Part shown: piece by piece, positions 30,824 through 51,200 of the stretch
Numbering within the stretch: the first letter of the stretch is position 1
Layout: the number at the start of each line of letters is the position of its first letter
Assembly (NCBI GenBank): GCA_002269645.1
Contig: NIVC01001545.1
Span: 62,001-126,000 of the forward strand
Direction: 5' to 3'
DNA: 64,000 nt
Source: Macrostomum lignano
Taxonomy: Eukaryota
The notes under the pieces: model-generated
Databases searched by the model: none
Told to the model about the DNA's origin: nothing
The model's input: the letters and a program-made list of their open reading frames with translations, nothing else
Translations under genes and position numbers: made by a program

Positions 30824-31201
30824 GCTGCACACAATTGGCAATGGAAGTCGTGCCAGAGGCACTGCTTCAATGACGGTTTCTGCTCCGAGTGTCTGCTGGT
30901 CCGCCTGTCTGCCAGCGACAACACCAGCGTGGCCCGCTGCACCCAGTGCCACTGCTACAGCCCGTTCAAGGGCGACAGGTGCGAGATTCGGACTGGCGAG
31001 TCCTACGAATCTGGCGTGGTGTCCACTTCGAAGGCTATGGCTGTCATTCTGCCGCTGATGGCCCTGCTGGTCCTGATTGCGGTCGGGCTGGTGCTCTACC
31101 ACAGGCACCGACATCTGAGGGGCCGCTCTAGGGAGCACCGCATCATCTACAATGAGGAGCGGGTGGATATGGACTCCGCCAGTGTGGCCAACGAGGCCTG
31201 A
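30824..31201 (+). CDS. Terminal exon of a single-pass membrane protein with one EGF-like domain
   Basis: After the acceptor ctgcag: AAHNWQWKSCQRHCFNDGFCSECLL..RCTQCHCYSPFKGDRCEI, then a hydrophobic TM segment (MAVILPLMALLVLIAVGLVLY), a basic stop-transfer HRHRH and a short tail. The upstream signal-peptide exon is unresolved (candidate 30067-30105). Confidence 0.75.
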   Translation, partial: AAHNWQWKSCQRHCFNDGFCSECLLVRLSASDNTSVARCTQCHCYSPFKGDRCEIRTGESYESGVVSTSKAMAVILPLMALLVLIAVGLVLYHRHRHLRGRSREHRIIYNEERVDMDSASVANEA

Positions 31202-33979: not shown

Positions 33980-36851
33980 ATGACCAAAATGAAGAAGAAA
34001 TTCACTCGCGGCGAGGCCACCACCTTCATCTCGCGCAAGCAGGCGCTGAAGCGGCTGCAGCTCTCGCTGAACGACTTCCGCCGGCTGTGCATCCTGAAGG
34101 GCGTCTACCCGCAGGAGCCGGTCAACAGGCGCCGGGTGAACAAGGGCTCTTCAACGCCAAAGGTGTACTATCACCTGAAGGACATCCAGTTCCTCGGCCA
34201 CGAGCGGGTCATGCAGAAGCTGCGCGACATCAAGGCTCACCTGAAGAAGGCCAAGCGGGCCAAGGAGCGCGGCGAGATGCACACGGTGGACCGGCTGCAG
34301 AGGAATTTCCCCGCCTACACCCTGGACCACATCATCCGGGAGCGCTACCCGGCATTCGAGGACGCGGTCAGGGATCTGGACGACTGTCTCTGCCTGTGCT
34401 TCCTGTTCTCCCGCCTGCCCAAAGAGCGCGGAGTCCCCGTGGAGCAGATCCGGCTGTCCGCCCGGCTGACTGTGCAGTTCCTGCACTGGGTCATCGCCGC
34501 CCGGGCCCTGCGCAAAGTGTTTGTGAGCATCAAGGGCTACTACTTCGAAGCGGACGTCAACGGCGTGTCCGTGGTGTGGTCGGTGCCGCACCAGCTGGGC
34601 CTGCACGACCCGGCCGATGTGGACTTCAAAATTCTGCGCACTTTCAACGATTTTTACACCACCATGCTGGGGTTCGTCAACTACAGGCTGTACAGCAGTC
34701 TGGGACTGGCTTACCCGCCTGCGCTGGCTAACGAGGTGAGCTAGTCTTTGTTTCGTGCTTTCCTATTGTACAATTCACCATACTGATCCTAAAGGCCGTG
34801 TGATAATTCCAAAATCCAGTCTCATTATCCCAAAATCTCATCTCATAGTCCCAAAATCCCATCTCATGATCCCCAAATCCCATCTCATGATCCAGAAATC
34901 CCATCATAATCTCTAAATCCCATCTCATGATCCCAAAATCCCATCTCATGATCCCAATTTTTATCTCACGATCCCAAAATCCCATCTCACAATCCCCAAA
35001 TCCCATCTTACAATCCCAAAATCCCATCTCATAATCCCAATGCCTAACTCATGATTCAGAATCCTATCTCGTTCTCAAAATCTTAACTCGTGATCCCAAG
35101 ATCTCATTCTCATCTCACAATCCCAATCCAAAGTACATGCTGAACTAAGCCCCTCCGAACGCCGCTCCGCCCAGGTGGACCCCTCCGACTACTGCCAGAC
35201 CGGCGAGGCCCACGAAGAGTTCATGGCGTCGCTCAACCAGCCGCTGTTGAGTCGCCGTGGCGGCGAAGCCGAGGGCAACCCGGCCGAGCCGGACGACTTC
35301 CCGGACGAGGAGGCCGAAGGCGCCGAGGCGGCCAGCGCCGCCAGGCGGAAGGCGCGCGCCCAGCAGCGGCTGTTCAACGGCTGCCGCTTTTTCTTGAACA
35401 GGGAGACCCCCAGGCAGATTCTCTGCTTTGTGATTCGCTCCTGCGGCGGCGAGGTGAGCCACCAGCCCACCCACACCCCATCAGCCCATCCCACACCCCA
35501 CCAGCCCATCCCACACCCCATCAGCCCATCCCACACCCCACCAGCCCATCCCACACCCCATCAGCCCATCCCACACCCCACCAGCCCATCCCACACCCCA
35601 TCAGCCCATCCCACACCCCATCAGCCCATCCCACACCCCATCAGCCCATCCCACACCCCATCAGCCCATCCCACACCCCATCAGCCCATCCCACACCCCA
35701 TCAGCCCATCCCACACCCCACCAGCCCATCCCACACCCCATCAGCCCATCCCAAACCCCACCAGCCCATCCCACACCCCATCAGCCCATCCCACACCCCA
35801 CCAGCCCATCCCACACCCCATCAGCCCACCCACACCCCATCAGCCCATCAGCCCATCCCACACCCCACCAGCCCATCCCACACCCCATCAGCCCGTCCCA
35901 CACCCCATCAGCCCATCCCACACCCCACCAGCCCATCCCACACCCCACCAGCCCATCCCACACCCCATCAGCCCATCCCACACCCCATCAGCCCATCCCA
36001 CACCCCATCAGCCACCCCACACCCCACCAGCCCATCCCACACCCCACCAACCCACCCACACCCCATCAGCCACCCCACACCCCACCAACCCACCCACACC
36101 CCATCAGCCACCCCATGACTCTCCCAATGCCACGCGCATTTTATTCCCATCCCAGTCGCCCCGGTTCTCCCTAACCCCCCCCCCCCCAACTGCCGCGCCG
36201 ACCCTGCAGGTGTCCTGGTCGCCGCTGAGCGGGCCGGGCAGCCGCTACCCGGAGTCGGACCAGCGCGTCACCCACCAGATTGTCGACCGGCCGCTCGGCG
36301 ACAGCCGGCTGTCCGGCCGGGCCTACGTGCAGCCGCAGTGGGTGTTCGACTGCGTGAACAGCGGCTCGCTGCTGCCCACCGGAGACTTCGCGCCCGGCCT
36401 GCCGCCGCCGCCTCACCTCAGCCCGTTCGCCGCCTACTCAGCTGACGATGCCGACGGAGGCGATGAAGCCGCCCAGCTGCCCTACTCGGCCACTCGGTCG
36501 GCGCCGCCAGACCCCGTGGAGCTCCGGCGACCGTCCGCTGCCGCTGAACTGGAGGAGGAGGACGATTATGAAGCTGAGGATGCTGCGAAGCGGGAAACTG
36601 CCGCTGCCGATGCAGCTCAGGTCGGGAAGCAGCAGAAAAATCAGAAAAAGCCGTCCGTGGTTGCCGAGGGAACTCAGCGTCGAACTCAGGACGCCAAGCA
36701 GGCGGCGGCCGAGGAGCGCCGGCTCCGGGAGATGATGCTGCCGAAGAAGCACAAGCAGCTGTACAAGAAGATGGTCTTCTCCCGGAAGCGGCAGGCTCGC
36801 GAGTCCGCCCAGCTGGCCGAGAAAAAGCAGAAACGGCAGCGAACTGCCTGA
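33980..36851 (+). CDS. PES1: Pescadillo homolog (PeBoW complex); exons 33980-34735, 35175-35453, 36210-36851 (~558 aa)
   Basis: N-terminal [77 protein letters not shown]; BRCT ([28 protein letters not shown]); C-terminal [15 protein letters not shown]. Confidence 0.96.
34800..35130. repeat. Degenerate ~21-bp repeat (aaaatcccatctcatgatccc), PES1 intron 1
   Basis: Direct. Confidence 0.8.
35458..36120. repeat. C/A-rich minisatellite (cacaccccatcagcccatcc), PES1 intron 2
   Basis: Direct. Confidence 0.92.
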
Positions 36852-39305: not shown

Positions 39306-40171
39306 AAATCCATATACTAAAAATGTAAGACTAAGACTCGTGGGGGAGCTCACGGGGGATTTCAGAAATGCTAGGTGGCTCAAGGCTCATGCGGAATCGC
39401 TGAGAAGGGTCAATGGGAGCTGTTGGTAGAACGGTAGGTCAAGTCTTAAAGGAAGGCTTTGATGCCAAAGCTCGCAGGGGTGCTGATATCTTAGGCTAGA
39501 CGGCTTTCGTGCAGGTTTTTTATTCATAAGCATCATCTTACTGAAGAAACTAACAATCGCGACAGTACAGGGTCAAAACCTGGCATGCAGTTTATGTAAA
39601 AAGAAAATTATTCATTTCATCGTTGCCTCCCAACGGGGGGCGCAGATTGCTAGTTTAGAAACCAGGTTTCTGAGCGCACACGCAAGGGGTCCGTAAATTT
39701 TCGGGTTCCAACCAGAGTGTACAATTTACATGTTGCCGGCTTCAAGAAGCTGCAAAGTGATGAAGTTTCACTGGCTGAATTCCCCCAACTAGCAGCAGCC
39801 AATCGGCAAGCGGCTTCATCGCGCTCAGCAGCCATAAGTGGGGATGCCGCGGGCGCACGGGCCGTGCTGGCACCGTCCATCAGACAGCAGCCGTTCACTC
39901 CCACGCCAAGGCAAACACAGGACCCGCTCGGCACCAGGCAATTACAGGTGAGCTGAGCTGCTACTGGGGGCCTGAGACACTCGACACACTGCAGATTAGA
40001 CGAGGGATTTTTCTTAATTCCAAGCAAATTAATCCCAAACAAACACACAGCCCCCCCGCAGTTGACTGCCGCTCCCACCGCTCCGCCCCCGCTGCGCAAA
40101 TTAATTTCAGAAAACGGAATCCCCACCAGAATTTGTCCAGCTCGGAGACCAAAGCCACACATTTTGAGATT

Positions 40172-41185
40172 ATGTCGGCACCACTGCGCTCAGCGATGCT
40201 GCTCCTCGCTGCCACCCTCTGCCTGCTCTCGGGCACCTGGACCGGCGTGTCCGCTCACGAGACTGCCGTCCAGCGAATCTGCGGCCGGAACCCGTTCTCC
40301 CAGATGAAGCAGATGGCCGAGCAAATTCTCGGCCGCTATCTTGATGCGTGTAGGTGGAACAATTTCTTTAAGTATACCGTAAAACGGCCCTATTAGAGCA
40401 GAAACTCTATATGTGGAAATCTTACTTTGTACGTGTCGTTTAATTAGATTTTTTATCCTGTTCACCACAAAACGGCCCTTTAAGGGCACAAAGTTGAAAA
40501 ATGGAAACGATTAGGCGTAGTTGTTCCCCGAGTTCTCTGACTTAAGTGCCATAAAACGGCCCTTTCAAGGGCACAAACTTAATCGATTAGGTGTAGTTTT
40601 CCCTTTTTTTTATTAGAGGCAGGGGGTTGTGTGCACCCTGGCGCACTTTAAGCGACATAGGCACACAACCGGCGAGAGGCATTACTGCCCATTCCGCCGA
40701 CTCCCCTGAGCAGGCATACAAGCGCGCGGATACGTACGCAGGCACACACTCACACAGGAGTGTACAGCGGCCTTAACTTTATTTTATCGTTAGGCATGTA
40801 CACTTCACTGCGCCTTGGGGGGTTGGCTCTCAAGGCCGTTAATTGCACGAGCAGAGCCAAGCCGAGATTCCAATTCAGCCCCAAATTAATGTGACTGCAC
40901 TTGGAATCGAGCCTGGGTCGCTGGCACACCAGAGCAGCTGCGCTACCGCTGGGCTACGGCCCCCTAGTTTTTCCCATAGTTATCTCTGACTTACGTGCCA
41001 TAAAACGGCCCTTTTAAGGGCACCAAATCCGAAGTCAGCAATCGCATCGCATAGCATTTATTTCAGACGAGTTCAACGCGATATTCAACCGCGCCCTGAA
41101 CGACAAGTTTCGCGGGCGGCGCCTGAGACAGCTGGTCACCCAGTATCAGGACTGCCGGCTGGCGGTGGAGAACGGGCACTTCTGA
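40172..41185 (+). CDS. Small secreted protein of unknown family, 98 aa, exons 40172-40349 and 41067-41185
   Basis: Signal peptide MSAPLRSAMLLLAATLCLLSGTWTGVSA. A phase-1 GTAGGT...TTTCAG intron joins GC3-rich exons. Mature sequence HETAVQRICGRNPFSQMKQMAEQILGRYLDAYEFNAIFNRALNDKFRGRRLRQLVTQYQDCRLAVENGHF*. ATTAAA/AATAAA follow the stop. Confidence 0.75.
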
Positions 41186-41469
41186 GCTGGCCCTAAAGAT
41201 TCTTATTAAAGGCTTTGATATAATCTCTGGAAGCCCATGACGATCCTGACAGCAAATCCAGCAGCGGATAATAAAATTAATTTGCCGTTCACTGTGAACC
41301 GCTTTACTGTGAAAACCTTTTTGAGAGTCACAGTTTCAGACTACAATTCTAATAAAAACCGACCAAGACCGATCGCCACTGTTAATTTTATTTTCGCATC
41401 ACCGAGTTCGAAGACGGACAATCGATAAAATTTGTTTAAAATCGATCGATAGCGAGCCTTGAGCAGATT

Positions 41470-42510: not shown

Positions 42511-43009
42511 CGAGAAAGCAAGAAATTGAATTCCAAGAGCAGGCATCAGTGAGCCAAAGCTATCCCATAACTCCTCTTATTGTGACTGCAACAATATCAG
42601 GCAGAAACGAATTAACAAACAGAATCAAAGCAATACAAATCTCATCACGTGATCTCACGCTGGCAGAAGTATGCTCATGGCTCATACAAAGAGAGCAGCC
42701 AGCAGTCAGACTCAAACCGCTACTCATTTCCGCTACAATGCAACACGGCTTGCTCCTCTACACACGTCATCAAGTTTCCCATACAGAAAGGACGAGAGTC
42801 CCGGCTCAACCGCGGTCAGCTGGTCAGCCAAACTGGCTGCATTTCTGGCCACACGCGATGCCGCACTCAGCAAGCAGGGCAGTTAAGGATGCAAGATGCT
42901 TCTTCGACTCAACACTGTGTTTTCAACTAACTATTTACTGTCTATGTATCCGAAGAAACTATTCCACCTCCCTTTCAGGCCATTCTCCCCTTTCATATGC
43001 ATTTCCTCC

Positions 43010-43620
43010 CAGCATATCCGATCCCTGCATTCCCTCTCCCTACATTCCCAATCCCTGCATTCCCTCTCCCTACATTCCCAATCATTGCATTACCTCTCCC
43101 TACATTCCCGATCCCTGCATTCCCTCTCCCTACATTCCCAATCCCTGCATTCCCTCTCCCTACATTCCCGATCCCTGCATTCCCTCTCCCTACATTCGCG
43201 ATCCCTGCATTCCCTCTCCCTACATTCCCGATCCCTGCATTCCCTCTCCCTACATTCCCGATCCCTGCATTCCCTCTCCCTACATTCCCGATCCCTGCAT
43301 TCCCTCTCCCTACATTCCCGATCCCTGCATTCCCTCTCCCTACATTCCCGATCCCTGCATTCCCTCTCCCTACATTCCCTCTCCCTACATTCCCTCTCCC
43401 TACATTCCCTCTCCCTACATTCCCTCTCCCTGCATTCCCTCTCCCTACATTCCCTCTCCCTACATTCCCGATCCCTGCATTCCCTCTCCCTACATTCCCT
43501 CTCCCTACATTCCCGATCCCTGCATTCCCTCTCCCTACATTCCCGATCCCTGCATTTCCTCTGCCTACATTTCGATCCCTACATTTCCAATCCCTGCATT
43601 TCCGATTGCTGCATTCTCCC
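43010..43620. repeat. 30-bp C-rich minisatellite (cccgatccctgcattccctctccctacatt)
   Basis: Direct. Confidence 0.93.
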
Positions 43621-43844
43621 CCTACGTTCCGTCCCTGAATTTACAATCCCTGCAATGCCTTCCTGCATTTTCCCTTTTCCATCGCCATCATAAATAAACA
43701 GACAAGACAGCAGTCAGCAGCAATTACTAGTACAAAATGAACTTTATTTTGCTAACAAGCGCATGAAATTGCTGGCAACAATATTTTTATCAAGCAAGCG
43801 GATTACAAGCTGAATTATTGATTTGAATCTTTGTATTCGGGTCC

Positions 43845-44735
43845 TTAATCCCCTTGTTTCTCGGACTGCTGCTTTTGCTGTTGCTCCCGGACCCGCTCCA
43901 CCAGCCGGCCCTCCATCTCTGCCTTCTTCTCCGCCTTCTTCTTAGCCTTCTTCTCTTTCTTGGCCTCCTCCGAGCGGGCCTCCTTCAGCCGGATGAACTT
44001 GTCGTCCTGGGCGTCAACCCGGAAGCCGAAGTGGTCCCTGGCCTCCTCCAGCTCGGCCAGCTTGGCCGCCGCCGCCTCCTCCTTGGCCTGGCGCGCCCTG
44101 GCCTGGCGGGCCTCAAACTTGGCGAGCTCCTCGGGCATCCGGGCCAGACCGGCGTCAATCCTGGCGTCCAGCTCCGCCAGCCGCCTGCGGCGCTCCTCAG
44201 CCGCCTCAGCCCGCCTGCTCAGCATCCCGGCCAGCCCGGAGCCGTCCAGATCGCCTTCCAGCCAGCGGTCCCTGGCGGTGGCCTCGGCCAGTTGGTCGGG
44301 TTCCGGCCAGCAGGCCGAGGGTTCGAGTCCCGTGGCCGCGGCGCCGAACCGGCCGATGCAGGCCCGCTGGTAGTCGCGGCCGGCCTCCAGGGCGTTGGCC
44401 GGCGGTGGGAAGCCGGACTCCGCCGAGCCGTTGAGGCGGCGGCGCAGCCGCCGCGGCAGGCCGCTGATGTCGGCCACCAGGGCGGCGCTCTCCGCCGCCG
44501 CCGCCGCCGGTTCGACTTCGCCGAATTCAACGGCTTCGTCCAGCTGCTTAAGCCGTTCGCGGCGCTCCGACATCCACTGGTCGTGAATGTCCGGCTGGCG
44601 TCGGCGCAGGTTGAAGTCGTCGACAAGCGAGTGCGGCCGATGCCATCGGGCAGCCACGTGCTTGTAGGCCAGGCCGCGGCGGGGGCAGCGGCTGCGGACC
44701 GCCCCGTGCTTGAGCAGCCCGCCGAGTTTGGCTTG
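43845..44735 (-). CDS. GADD45GIP1: GADD45GIP1/CRIF1, mitochondrial ribosomal protein mL64; main exon, start exon unresolved
   Basis: YQRACIGRFGAAATGLEPSACWPEPDQLAE, LARMPEELAKF and EARDHFGFRVDAQDDKF align by eye with the CRIF1 family (ARYGAASGV.PGSLWPSPEQL; MAKMPQM; LGYQVDPRSARF). Lys/Glu coiled tail. No in-frame ATG in this exon. Confidence 0.85.
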   Translation of the reverse strand, partial: QAKLGGLLKHGAVRSRCPRRGLAYKHVAARWHRPHSLVDDFNLRRRQPDIHDQWMSERRERLKQLDEAVEFGEVEPAAAAAESAALVADISGLPRRLRRRLNGSAESGFPPPANALEAGRDYQRACIGRFGAAATGLEPSACWPEPDQLAEATARDRWLEGDLDGSGLAGMLSRRAEAAEERRRRLAELDARIDAGLARMPEELAKFEARQARARQAKEEAAAAKLAELEEARDHFGFRVDAQDDKFIRLKEARSEEAKKEKKAKKKAEKKAEMEGRLVERVREQQQKQQSEKQGD

Positions 44736-44842
44736 CAGTGAGCTTAGCAGAAGGTGCAACCGGGGGGGGGGGGTTGGTTCTGCAACCGGAATCGAGCTCG
44801 GTACCTTTTAAAGGTTTTAAAGAGTTTTCTTGAATTATTCAG

Positions 44843-44845
44843 TAA

Positions 44846-44909
<64 letters not shown>

Positions 44910-44936
44910 TGGTGTCTGTCTGTCTGTCTGTCTGTA

Positions 44937-44979
<43 letters not shown>

Positions 44980-44990
44980 TGGTGTCTGTC
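44843..44990. repeat. (GTCT)n microsatellite
   Basis: Direct. Confidence 0.97.
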
Positions 44991-45047
44991 TACAGTGTGC
45001 ACAGCAGCCTTCAGACATGTACACTCTTTGAGCATTGTGCGGTTTGG

Positions 45048-46062
45048 CACTCATTGGCGTGAACAGCATCCGGGAGAAGTCTAGATCACTCATTGGCGTG
45101 AACAGCATCCGGGAGAAGTCTAGATCACTCATTGGCGTGAACAGCATCCGGGAGAAGTCTAGATCACTCATTGGCGTGAATAGCATCCGGGAGAAGTCTA
45201 GATCACTCATTGGCGTGAATAGCATCCGGGAGAAGTCTAGATCACTCATTGGCGTGAACAGCATCCGGGAGAAGTCTAGATCACTCATTGGCGTGAATAG
45301 CATCCGGGAGAAGTCTAGATCACTCATTGGCGTGAATAGCATCCGGGAGAAGTCTAGATCACTCATTGGCGTGAATAGCATCCGGGAGAAGTCTAGATCA
45401 CTCATTGGCGTGAACAGCATCCGGGAGAAGTCTAGATCACTCATTGGCGTGAATAGCATCCGGGAGAAGTCTAGATCACTCATTGGCGTGAATAGCATCC
45501 GGGAGAAGTCTAGATCACTCATTGGCGTGAATAGCATCCGGGAGAAGTCTAGATCACTCATTGGCGTGAATAGCATCCGGGAGAAGTCTAGATCACTCAT
45601 TGGCGTGAATAGCATCCGGGAGAAGTCTAGATCACTCATTGGCGTGAACAGCATCCGGGAGAAGTCTAGATCACTCATTGGCGTGAATAGCATCCGGGAG
45701 AAGTCTAGATCACTCATTGGCGTGAATAGCATCCGGGAGAAGTCTAGATCACTCATTGGCGTGAACAGCATCCGGGAGAAGTCTAGATCACTCATTGGCG
45801 TGAATAGCATCCGGGAGAAGTCTAGATCACTCATTGGCGTGAATAGCATCCGGGAGAAGTCTAGATCACTCATTGGCGTGAATAGCATCCGGGAGAAGTC
45901 TAGATCACTCATTGGCGTGAATAGCATCCGGGAGAAGTCTAGATCACTCATTGGCGTGAATAGCATCCGGGAGAAGTCTAGATCACTCATTGGCGTGAAT
46001 AGCATCCGGGAGAAGTCTAGATCACTCATTGGCGTGAATAGCATCCGGGAGAAGTCTAGATC
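45048..46062. repeat. 39-bp minisatellite, ~26 near-identical copies (cactcattggcgtgaa[c/t]agcatccgggagaagtctagat)
   Basis: Direct. Confidence 0.97.
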
Positions 46063-46574
46063 AATGCATGCATGGCTTGTGATTTCCGTATGCATATAAA
46101 GTACCCAGAGCTAAGGACAGCAGTTGGCACTGTTCCACGTCCAGAAGCGTTCGCAGATCAGATTCGATAAGGCAAATACCTGAACTGTAAAAACTGAAGC
46201 GCTGGGAGACAATGGAGGGGGGATTCTCAAGCCCCGAACAGATTGGCATCAGGGAAACAGAGGCAGGGACAGGCATAAACAAAGGCTTCCATGCTTATCA
46301 CTAGGCTAGCAGCACTGGCACAATGGGACCAGTGACGCCTTACTGCATGCAGTGTTGTGCTTGACAATAACTGTGAAATAAGCGAGTCCAACGGTTAAAC
46401 TATCAGCAAAACGTTGGCTCTTACACAGCCCAGTGATTGCGAATGTTGCTGCAGTTTATTTATAGCAGTTAAACGCTTACAAGCATTTCTTTAGCGAAAG
46501 ATAGTCGCGTGTTTTATTAGTGCTAAGAGGCGTATTTGGAGACTCTGCGGGATGGGAAAGGAGCCTTGGTTATA

Positions 46575-48267: not shown

Positions 48268-51200
48268 TCATTTAAAGTTGAACCGCACCTGCACCAGGTA
48301 CCTCAGACGCAGCTGATTCACATTGTACACAACGTACTCATTATAATTGAGCACAGTTGACAGGTTGCTGGCCACCAGCTTGCCAATGGGAACTTTGCAC
48401 CCGTCGGCCAACTGCTCTGCAGACGAAGGATTTGGAGTCAATTCTCCAATGCCTTTGACGCTGTTGAATCCGGCAGGCAGCTTGGCCGCCTCATAGTCGG
48501 CCTTGTTCAGCTCTCGACTGGTGCCCAGGGCCACTTCGCATAGGGCCAGCACACCTGTTGGCTTGCTTCTAGTAGCGTACAGGTAATTGGCCGACTTGCT
48601 GCTCACGTCGGCAAAGTACACGCCTTTGCCGAACATGTAGCCTGTGGCCGGCGCCTCGGGGGGCGCCACGCGGAGGCCCTGAGATGGGAGCGGGAGATTT
48701 GGGGCTGCTTGAGGGCGATTCTTGGGGCATTTTGAGGGTGATTCTTGGGGCTGTTTGAGGGCGATTCTTGGGGCAGTTTGAGGGCGATTCTTGGGGCAGT
48801 TTGAGGGCGATTCTTGGGGCAGTTTGAGGGCGATTCTTGGGGCAGTTTGAGGGCGATTCTTGGGGCAGTTTGAGGGCGATTCTTGGGGCAGTTCGAGGGC
48901 AATTCTTGGGGCAGTTCGAGGGCAATTCTTGGGGCAGTTCGAGGGCAATTCTTGGAGCAGTTCGAGGGCAATTCTTGGGGCAGTTCGAGGGCAATTCTTG
49001 GGGCAGTTCGAGGGCAATTCTTGGAGCAGTTCGAGGGCGATTCTTGGGGCAGTTCGAGGGCGATTCTTGGGGCAGTTAGAGGGCAATTCTTGGGGCAGTT
49101 CGAGGGCAATTCTTGGGGCAGTTCGAGGGCAATTCTTGGGGCAGTTCGAGGGCGATTCCTGGAAGGGATTGTTGTTAGATTCTTAAAAGGCTACAGATTA
49201 GGCGGTAAGCGGACTCACCTGAGACAGAATTCCAGCCCAGTTAGACAGCCGAGACCCGTGCCACAGCAGCATCCGGTTAGGCAGATCCGATCTGAACCGA
49301 GCAGTCTCAGGCGCTCGCTGCACTTTAAACAGCGCTCCCAAACTCAGGGTGTACAGACTGTGAGTCGGACCGTGAGTAGTCTGCAGGTATCTGTCAATCA
49401 TGGAGAACTCCTCAGAATTGGAGTCCACAGGCTCAATATCGCAGGCCAGCCGCCTGTAGCACCGGTCCAGCGGGTGCTCAGCAGCTGCCGAGTCCCCAGA
49501 CTCCTCCGCTCCATCGCTAACCACTTTCAGAGCAGTTTGAATCTGCTCCAAGGCCTGCAGCAGATCTGCCTTGGCCTGGATCTCTTCTAGGCTGCGAATA
49601 ACGGGCGGTACCCGCATGCCGAAGTCGTGCGGTATTCGGGTGTAGAAATCGTTGCAGGCCGACACGAGCTTCTGGCCGGAGCTGTGCCCGCCTCGGACCA
49701 GCGCTTCGATAGCTTTGAGGGCTACGAAACCGGCTTTGATCTGGGCGGCGGTCAGCTTGCCAAGAGGCATCCGCTTGGCATCGTAGCGCATCTCAACCAC
49801 CGTGTCCTCCATCTGCTGCACATCGCAGATCATGCCCAGCAGGGCCTGCAGTGCCGCGTGCAGCCGGCTGGCCGCCTCAGCTTTCCGCTCAGCGGCGGCC
49901 TGTTTCTTGGCTGCTTTGTCAGCTTTGTCGTCACCTGCGCCGCCGTCGCCGCCAGCCTTGTGATCCCGGTGCACCAGATCGTACTTGCCAGCCACCTACA
50001 CAAATTAATTTACATTATTTTTAAGCGTTTTTTTGGTAGAAAAAAAACTTTTATTTTCTACTGACAGTAGAGCTATAAGAAAGAGCATCAAATTTCTGAA
50101 AAGTTATTTTAAAAAAAAGGTTTCAATTTCGTCTTTTTAGAACCAGAATTTCCCAGGTAAGGTACCACGAGGTACCACAACCCGAACCCTGAACCAAGGT
50201 ATCACAACTCGAACCCTGAACCAAGGTACCACAACTCGAACCCTGAACAAGGTACCACAACTCGAACCCTGAACAAGGTACCACAACCAGAACCCTGAAC
50301 CAAGGTACCACAACCAGAACCCTGAACCAAGGTACCACAACCCGAACCCTGAACCAAGGTATCACAACTCGAACCCTGAACCAAGGTACCACAACCAGAA
50401 CCCTGAACCAAGGTACCACAACCCGAACCCTGAACCAAGGTACCACAACCAGAACCCTGAACCAAGGTACCACAACCAGAACCCTGAACCAAGGTACCAC
50501 AACCAGAACCCTGAACCAATGTACCACAACCCAAACCCTAAACCAAGGTACCACAACCAGAAACCTGAACCAAGGTACCACAACCCGAACCCTGAACCAA
50601 GGTACCACAACCCGAAACCAGCAAGACCAACCTTGGTAAAAGTTTTAGCAGCCACAGATGCCCATTCATTTTTTGTTTTATCCTCGAACTTCTTGCAGAA
50701 GAGCGCCTTGGCCCGGTCAAGGTCGGGACCACAAGGCACCAGACTGTGCTGACCGGTTTTGCCCACCCGGCCCCAGCGGAACCAGACCCAGTAGTCTCTG
50801 GGCGCCTTGTGCAACAGCTGCAACAGGTAGAACTTGTTGTTGTTAAACTGCAAGTTGGTCTGGTTCAGCATAGCGTCGTACACTGTGCCGCCTTCGGCGT
50901 GGACTCGAACTGAAGCTGCCGACAGGCCCGTCAGCTCGGAGTCCACCGCGGCGCCACCGCGGACAAGCACCACCTTCTCGTCTGAGCCGTCTTCATCCTC
51001 CTCAGCTGCTGCTGATGCTGCTGCACGACCGCTGCTACCGTTCTTCTGCTTCTGGCGTTTCTGCTTTTGCTGCCGCTTCTGGGCTTCTTCGTCATCACCG
51101 ACATCATCATCAGATGGTGGAGGCGACGGAGACGCGGCTGGCCGCTTGCGAGCCCCAGCTGCCAGACGGCCGCTGGTTCGGCGGGTTGGCGCTGAAGGCG

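Follow-up and report, generated by a model that had tools for sequence, protein, structure and literature searches.

Organization of the locus

The window, that is, the whole 64-kb stretch of Macrostomum lignano DNA analysed here, carries on its forward strand a small gene with two coding exons. Degenerate motif searches identified no further copies in the 64-kb window, where it is a single gene. The features of the gene and of its neighbourhood are listed below.

ORFs 33980-36851, + strand: pescadillo homologue, according to Pfam labels on the homeologous loci
39844..39947, + strand: upstream exon, probably 5'UTR, with an upstream ATG at 39844 and the donor CAG/GTGAGC at 39947/39948; the N-terminal extensions of the public models P0001, P0008, P0009, P0002 and P0010 map here
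39948..40110, + strand: 5' intron, annotated with either of two acceptors, so that the following exon starts at 40111 (NCBI models) or at 40130 (UniProt model), as read from P0001 and P0002 against the sequence
40111..40171, + strand: putative 5'UTR at the head of coding exon 1, which the public models translate
40172..40255, + strand: start codon and signal peptide of 28 aa, assigned by eye; its counterparts in the paralogues are divergent in sequence
40256..40349, + strand: start of the mature chain (residues 29-59 and the first base of Tyr60), with helix 1, the RICGxNPF turn including Cys37, and helix 2
40350..41066, + strand: phase-1 intron of 717 bp, GT...AG, whose position and phase are kept in the paralogues; it holds hairpin repeats and an insertion of ~350 bp, the latter absent from homeologue g1
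41067..41185, + strand: coding exon 2, from the second base of the Tyr60 codon through residue 98 to the stop codon; helix 3, basic loop, helix 4 with Cys89, and the C-terminal VENxHF
41111..41122, + strand: RGRR, proposed furin-like site; paralogue-specific form of [K/R]-G-x-R-L in the helix 3-4 loop, at the junction with helix 4
41186..41356, + strand: 3'UTR with AATAAA candidates at 41270-41275 and 41351-41356, near-identical in three homeologues
43845-44759, - strand: CR6_interact/CRIF1-type gene, according to Pfam labels on the homeologous loci
48268-50973, - strand: gene resembling poly(ADP-ribose) polymerases, with WGR and catalytic-type sequence, from a reading of the ORF translations only

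Joining 40172-40349 to 41067-41185 yields a protein of 98 aa (MSAPL...VENGHF). Its ATG lies in the context GAGATTATGTC, where position -3 is occupied by an A. The donor GCGT/GTAGGT closes exon 1 at 40349, exon 2 begins at 41067 after the acceptor TTTCAG/AC and its polypyrimidine tract (ATTTATTTCAG, followed by AC), and the TGA stop occupies 41183-41185. The intron is in phase 1 and splits the codon of Tyr60 (T/AC). When the 40349 donor is read through without splicing, a stop codon is met 15 codons further on. The 40349/41067 splice proposed in the preliminary description is borne out by the GenBank and UniProt models, which share the LDA-Y-EFN junction; the alternative donor that it also pointed out is used in no public model.

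The precursor is composed of a signal peptide, MSAPLRSAMLLLAATLCLLSGTWTGVSA, and a mature chain, HETAVQRICGRNPFSQMKQMAEQILGRYLDAYEFNAIFNRALNDKFRGRRLRQLVTQYQDCRLAVENGHF. The cleavage site (GVSA/HET, after Ala28) was assigned by eye, as was the layout of n-, h- and c-regions with an AxA-type end. The 70-aa mature chain contains exactly two cysteines, Cys37 (40280-40282) and Cys89 (41153-41155), a third one (C17) being located within the signal peptide. The RGRR motif corresponds to residues 75-78 (41111-41122; residues 47-50 of the mature chain) and is thus located between the two cysteines. Inspection of the 98-aa protein revealed neither an N-x-S/T sequon nor a KDEL-type end, nor any further hydrophobic segment. 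The spliced translation therefore agrees with the secreted protein initially described: a signal peptide and a 70-aa chain with two cysteines and RGRR between them.

Intron repeats and surrounding sequences

The intron includes, between 40376 and 41026, four copies of a hairpin motif, AAAACGGCCCTTTyAAGGGCAC, near 40380, 40468, 40553 and 41002. The two strictest copies obtain a weak score with the Rfam histone 3' stem-loop profile (16 bits for a gathering score of 34). No strict copy was identified elsewhere in the 64-kb window. In homeologue g1 (locus L006, 3650-3865) the motif is part of a 78-bp tandem array. A segment of ~350 bp (~40610-40965) is found both in the window copy, g3, and in g2, while g1 has extra hairpin-repeat units at this place, which corresponds to an indel between homeologues. 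The 3' part of this segment looked tRNA- or SINE-like by eye on the minus strand, but neither ARAGORN nor Rfam identified a tRNA.

Long and very regular minisatellite-like arrays occupy 35400-36200, 42900-43700, 44840-46100, 48500-49100 and 50120-50610. They are open in several frames (for example those of the DLDFSRMLFTPMS unit) and coincide with strong local swings of the GC skew. One of them lies inside the long ORF 35175-36851, which also holds pescadillo coding sequence. As the ORF list ignores splicing, this array may be intronic.

Homeologous copies, public gene models and translation start

The gene is Mlig030503 and is already annotated as encoding a hypothetical protein. Of its three homeologous copies, the one in the window corresponds to g3 (PAA66646), with which it also shares the upstream residues KRNPHQ...THFEI. 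Over their C-terminal 98 residues, PAA66660 (g2), PAA66678 (g1) and PAA66646 (g3) are 100% identical to the 98-aa product. The C-terminal 98 residues of UniProt A0A1I8G2A3 are also 100% identical, and A0A1I8JIL4 is likewise among the matching M. lignano models. The flanks of the three homeologous loci agree, with pescadillo upstream and the CR6_interact/CRIF1-type gene downstream. At the DNA level the homeologues are near-identical, and their 297-nt CDS differs at a single site, where g1 has GCA for GCG, a synonymous change.

The public models differ from the 98-aa reading by their N-terminus. All three NCBI homeologue models start at the ATG at 39844, 55 residues ahead of the signal peptide, and predict a protein of 153 aa; an older UniProt model (P0010) is open from about 39717. 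If the 153-aa protein were the true product, the hydrophobic stretch would be an internal signal-anchor or an uncleaved segment, and no free 70-aa chain would be produced. An exon start at 40111 does put the ATG at 39844 in frame, and all three NCBI homeologue models use it. However, the acceptor of the UniProt model lies 19 nt downstream and the two exon starts consequently correspond to different frames: with 40130, the ATG at 39844 is out of frame. Moreover, the extension is a low-complexity, Arg/Pro/Ser-rich sequence without any match. The amino acid differences between homeologues (P to S and E to D, in two of the three, within 40111-40171) are confined to it, with none in the 98-aa ORF. 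Finally, the paralogues B and C presented below begin directly with their signal peptide. Taken together, these points make the 153-aa product very unlikely. They favor a translation start at 40172, which is most likely the genuine one, the upstream exon then corresponding to a 5'UTR or a uORF. The N-termini of the NCBI models thus probably start 55 codons too early.

A family of three paralogues under purifying selection

Mlig030503 (hereafter A) belongs to a family of three paralogue groups, all from M. lignano. The second group, B, is Mlig030769 (PAA52929, PAA57787; P0003, 106 aa), and the third, C, is Mlig019370 (P0012, "BOX15_Mlig019370g5", 102 aa). The models P0004 and P0011 are mis-modelled versions of paralogue B. 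One of them, P0004 (A0A1I8JL11), carries the UniProt name "RGS domain-containing protein", which is not retained here, neither RGS nor any other Pfam family being matched at E<=10 by P0004 or P0003. This model skips the residues FERLKQIAENILQRTLTGP at locus L001, indicating that its exon boundary is wrong.

The mature 70-aa chains of the three paralogues align without gap and share 54-61% identity. Both cysteines are among the 34 of 70 positions that are invariant. The invariant blocks include RICGxNPF, EF...F.RAL.D, G.RL, VT.YQ.C.L and, at the C-terminus, VENxHF. A signal peptide is likewise common to all three, but its sequence cannot be aligned between them and ends in AAA/Q and ALA/Q in the paralogues. 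The intron is located at the homologous codon and in phase 1 in B (locus L001, C/CC) and in C (locus L002, G/AC), as it is in A (T/AC). The window gene thus exhibits the pattern of an as yet undescribed Mlig030503/030769/019370 family: a signal peptide, 70 aa of the form RICGxNPF...[K/R]GxRL...C...VENxHF and an intron in phase 1 ahead of the E-F residues of helix 3. All members are uncharacterised. B and C share with A both cysteines, the RICGxNPF and VENxHF blocks, the signal peptide and the position of the phase-1 intron. They differ from A by the presence of KGPR instead of RGRR, by an N-terminal Gln instead of His and by their introns (roughly 110 and 260 bp as read by eye, versus 717 bp in A). 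The net charge, counted by hand, also varies (about +4 in A versus about 0 and +2 in the paralogues), which argues against a generic cationic antimicrobial role. It should be noted that small ORFs for EGF-like single-pass membrane proteins are found upstream of paralogue A (30929-31201, + strand) and of paralogue C (L002, 3342-3743, + strand), both with a C-rich module, a transmembrane segment and a basic tail. They may represent a remnant of paralogous synteny, or a coincidence.

Codons were counted by hand. At 20 of the 34 invariant positions, at least one paralogue has a differing synonymous codon, and 21 of the 42 identical degenerate codons differ between A and C. This far-reaching divergence of synonymous sites, with the protein held, indicates an old duplication and purifying selection. 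Together with the splice junction shared by two independent sets of models and the intron codon and phase kept at two paralogous loci, it indicates that the sequence is more than a chance ORF: on these comparisons, we consider it settled that this is a functional coding gene. The opposite view, a functionless chance ORF or an annotation artefact, could invoke the short length, the lack of a Pfam domain and the lack of a homologue found beyond one species. It is extremely improbable in view of three paralogue groups with a kept intron phase, 34 invariant residues with synonymous turnover and a confident fold prediction. The gene is therefore a genuine M. lignano gene for a small secreted protein. 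Since its RGRR site, discussed below, is not conserved, the chain is probably secreted uncut.

No relative was identified outside M. lignano using phmmer against 1.84 billion representative proteins, a set of clusters drawn from NCBI, UniRef and MetaClust entries among which other Macrostomum transcriptomes apparently do not figure. Word-index searches, whether started from the query, paralogue B or the family profile, also returned M. lignano proteins only. The family consequently looks lineage restricted, as initially suspected. Since it goes back to an old duplication and is under purifying selection, it is likely to occur in other Macrostomum species. Two repeat proteins, P0005 (phmmer E 1e-4, 7 stretches) and P0006 (E 6e-4, 5 stretches), were judged to result from additive low-complexity or repeat matches and not to be homologues. 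P0005 (663 aa) is composed of tandem units of ~62-63 aa, each with two cysteines and a KR end. It looks like a multi-copy precursor of secreted peptides and is probably unrelated.

Predicted structure of the mature chain

The AlphaFold2 model of the mature chain, computed from an alignment of three sequences only, has a mean pLDDT of 91.4 and a pTM of 0.73, and four of the five models reach at least 86. A single-sequence run on the 98-aa precursor was uninformative (pLDDT 60). The mature chain is confidently predicted to form a compact domain of four amphipathic helices (mature residues 2-9, 13-25, 31-42 and 48-66) separated by turns of 3-5 residues, in support of the amphipathic helical chain noticed at first reading. 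In this model the first cysteine (mature Cys9, Cys37 of the precursor) is positioned at the end of helix 1 and the second (mature Cys61, Cys89) within helix 4. A Cys37-Cys89 intramolecular disulfide stapling helix 1 to helix 4 is plausible. The two residues could instead be engaged in intermolecular bonds.

Comparison with known protein families

The preliminary description had recognised no known family in this protein, and the searches lead to the same result. Pfam assigned no family to the full-length protein, to its mature chain or to the paralogues, the best scores (DUF5133, E 1.3; GDP_Man_Dehyd, E 0.19) being far below the cut-offs. A sequence profile search of the PDB returned noise only, such as troponin C at E 0.37. 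Foldseek, which is weak on very small all-helical proteins and was run against the PDB and the viral BFVD library, gave for the model with pLDDT 91 a best PDB match at E 1.9 with a TM of 0.40 (24 matches at E<=10), and no real match in BFVD (best E 0.88). An EF-hand pair was considered from the troponin C match and from calmodulin lobes among the Foldseek matches (E 5.7-9.4, TM 0.28-0.36), all of them sub-threshold. It is rejected, since the inter-helix loops of 3-5 residues are too short for calcium binding, which needs 12-residue loops.

Several families of small secreted proteins nevertheless share part of this architecture. Insulin and relaxin are produced as secreted precursors whose chains are held by disulfides after a convertase cut, and the likeness would exist only if the 98-aa protein were cleaved. 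They carry six cysteines (CCxxxC...C in the A chain, C...C in the B chain) and a C-peptide, whereas the 98-aa protein has two invariant cysteines and no excised C-peptide. No Pfam insulin match was obtained at E<=10, and the protein is not insulin-like, in agreement with the preliminary description. The CHH/ITP/MIH neurohormones are also helical, secreted, single-domain proteins of ~72 aa that act uncut. However, they possess six cysteines and three disulfides, versus two cysteines here, and neither a Crust_neurohorm Pfam match nor a Foldseek match was found. The cestode hydrophobic-ligand-binding proteins (HLBP) and the 8-kDa subunits of Echinococcus antigen B (Pfam Taeniidae_ag) are flatworm-restricted, helical, secreted proteins of ~8 kDa encoded by small genes with few exons. 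The intron of Taeniidae_ag genes falls between signal peptide and mature chain; that of the M. lignano gene interrupts the mature chain itself. No Taeniidae_ag match was obtained with Pfam at E<=10 or with phmmer.

Secretoglobin (uteroglobin/SCGB1A1) comes nearest by its size, its number of helices and the placement of its cysteines. Secretoglobins are known from vertebrates, and their cysteines, at positions 3 and 69, form interchain bonds. The likeness is architectural only: a secreted mature chain of ~70 aa forms four helices and has two cysteines, one towards each end, which in the M. lignano protein are located at mature positions 9 and 61. Membership of the secretoglobin family was rejected, hhalign giving a probability of 0.8% with a human SCGB1A1 sequence entered by hand and Pfam no match. 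The uteroglobin fold was rejected as well, none of the 24 PDB matches obtained with Foldseek at E<=10 being a secretoglobin chain. The architecture itself, with 70 aa, four amphipathic helices and one cysteine near each end, would suit a disulfide-linked antiparallel homodimer in the manner of secretoglobins, enclosing a pocket for a hydrophobic molecule (lipid, steroid or pheromone). A 70-aa monomer also leaves little room for a cavity of its own. We regard such a carrier as unlikely, given the missing sequence or profile similarity to SCGB1A1, the lack of secretoglobins in the structural matches and the fact that the monomer folds confidently alone in AlphaFold2.

RGRR, a processing site or part of a basic patch

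According to the preliminary description, a convertase would cut at RGRR to produce a two-chain, disulfide-linked peptide. In such a prohormone the cut would occur after Arg78 ([K/R]-G-x-R/L), and the two halves, HETAV...FRGRR and LRQLV...ENGHF, would be held by Cys37-Cys89. The RGRR motif is indeed present in paralogue A and flanked by the two cysteines. In addition, a basic P4 (K/R75) and an Arg at P1 (R78) are found in all three paralogues, which fits the (K/R)-X2-(K/R) convertase rule. The pattern conserved in this way is the minimal (K/R)-Xn-(K/R), in the form [K/R]-G-x-R, and it adjoins or enters helix 4 of the compact model.

Comparison with the paralogues does not support this cleavage. 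The corresponding columns read E-K-G-P-R-L and H-K-G-P-R-L, with neither a dibasic pair nor R-x-x-R, so that no R-x-[K/R]-R or dibasic site is kept among the relatives and RGRR is specific to paralogue A. What is common to all three is [K/R]-G-x-R-L-[K/R], where P2 is Pro in two of the three (B and C) and the Leu at P1' is invariant. Established rules for monobasic and furin cleavage disfavour an aliphatic P1' such as Leu. In the AlphaFold2 model helix 4 starts at G76, which would place the scissile bond in the first helical turn and not in a free loop; the 10-residue blocks at the site have a pLDDT of 91-94. Conservation is even over the 70-aa chain, suggesting one folded domain rather than a precursor with spacers: both would-be chains are conserved as parts of a single hydrophobic-core fold, and neither an amidation signal nor a spacer peptide is present. 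We therefore consider a two-chain prohormone quite unlikely. If the cleavage nevertheless occurred, the family would define a new class of flatworm two-chain, single-disulfide hormones or pheromones, with one cut, no excised connecting peptide and a fold without a solved counterpart.

The motif by itself is not beyond chance. With 9 Arg among 70 mature residues, we roughly estimate that composition alone would provide ~1 R-x-x-R and ~0.2 R-x-[KR]-R, and this expectation of about one R-x-x-R favors regarding RGRR as part of the conserved basic patch. From the alignment and the predicted structure, it is read as a local, paralogue-specific Arg enrichment of this patch at the N-terminus of helix 4 and not as a conserved processing site. 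The striking feature of the initial description, a furin site bridged by a disulfide, thus fails the comparison with the paralogues.

Proposed mode of action and significance

The explanation that we favor, with some reserve, is that of an orphan secreted four-helix mini-protein acting as an intact, folded extracellular ligand or binder, as suggested by the sequence comparisons and the structural model. The gene would comprise a 5'UTR exon and two coding exons, with translation starting at 40172. The 28-aa signal peptide would direct co-translational entry into the ER and be removed after Ala28. The 70-aa chain would then fold into one compact four-helix bundle, its helices being amphipathic, and one disulfide between Cys37 and Cys89 would probably staple the first helix to the last. 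The protein, of ~8 kDa and with no glycosylation site, retention signal or membrane anchor, would be released intact and serve extracellularly, in folded form, as a ligand or binding protein. This role is the default that such an architecture suggests. Contacts might be made through the RICGxNPF turn, the free C-terminal VENxHF and the [K/R]-G-x-R-L-[K/R] basic patch where helix 4 begins. For the roles suggested at first reading (hormone, pheromone, seminal or adhesive secretion), the results speak neither for nor against.

The gene identifiers were not found in literature full texts or in the supplements of M. lignano papers available in text form, and hence provide no expression information. 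A literature search with peptide strings returned an irrelevant match only. At present this protein is one of many uncharacterised orphan secreted proteins and its interest is modest. Macrostomum lignano is, however, a model for regeneration, bioadhesion and sexual conflict, where small lineage-specific secreted proteins often do the biology. With three old paralogues, purifying selection and a confidently predicted compact fold that has no solved relative, the family lends itself well to further study. Were it shown to act as a signalling ligand, or to belong to the seminal or adhesive secretions, those toolkits would gain a new fold.
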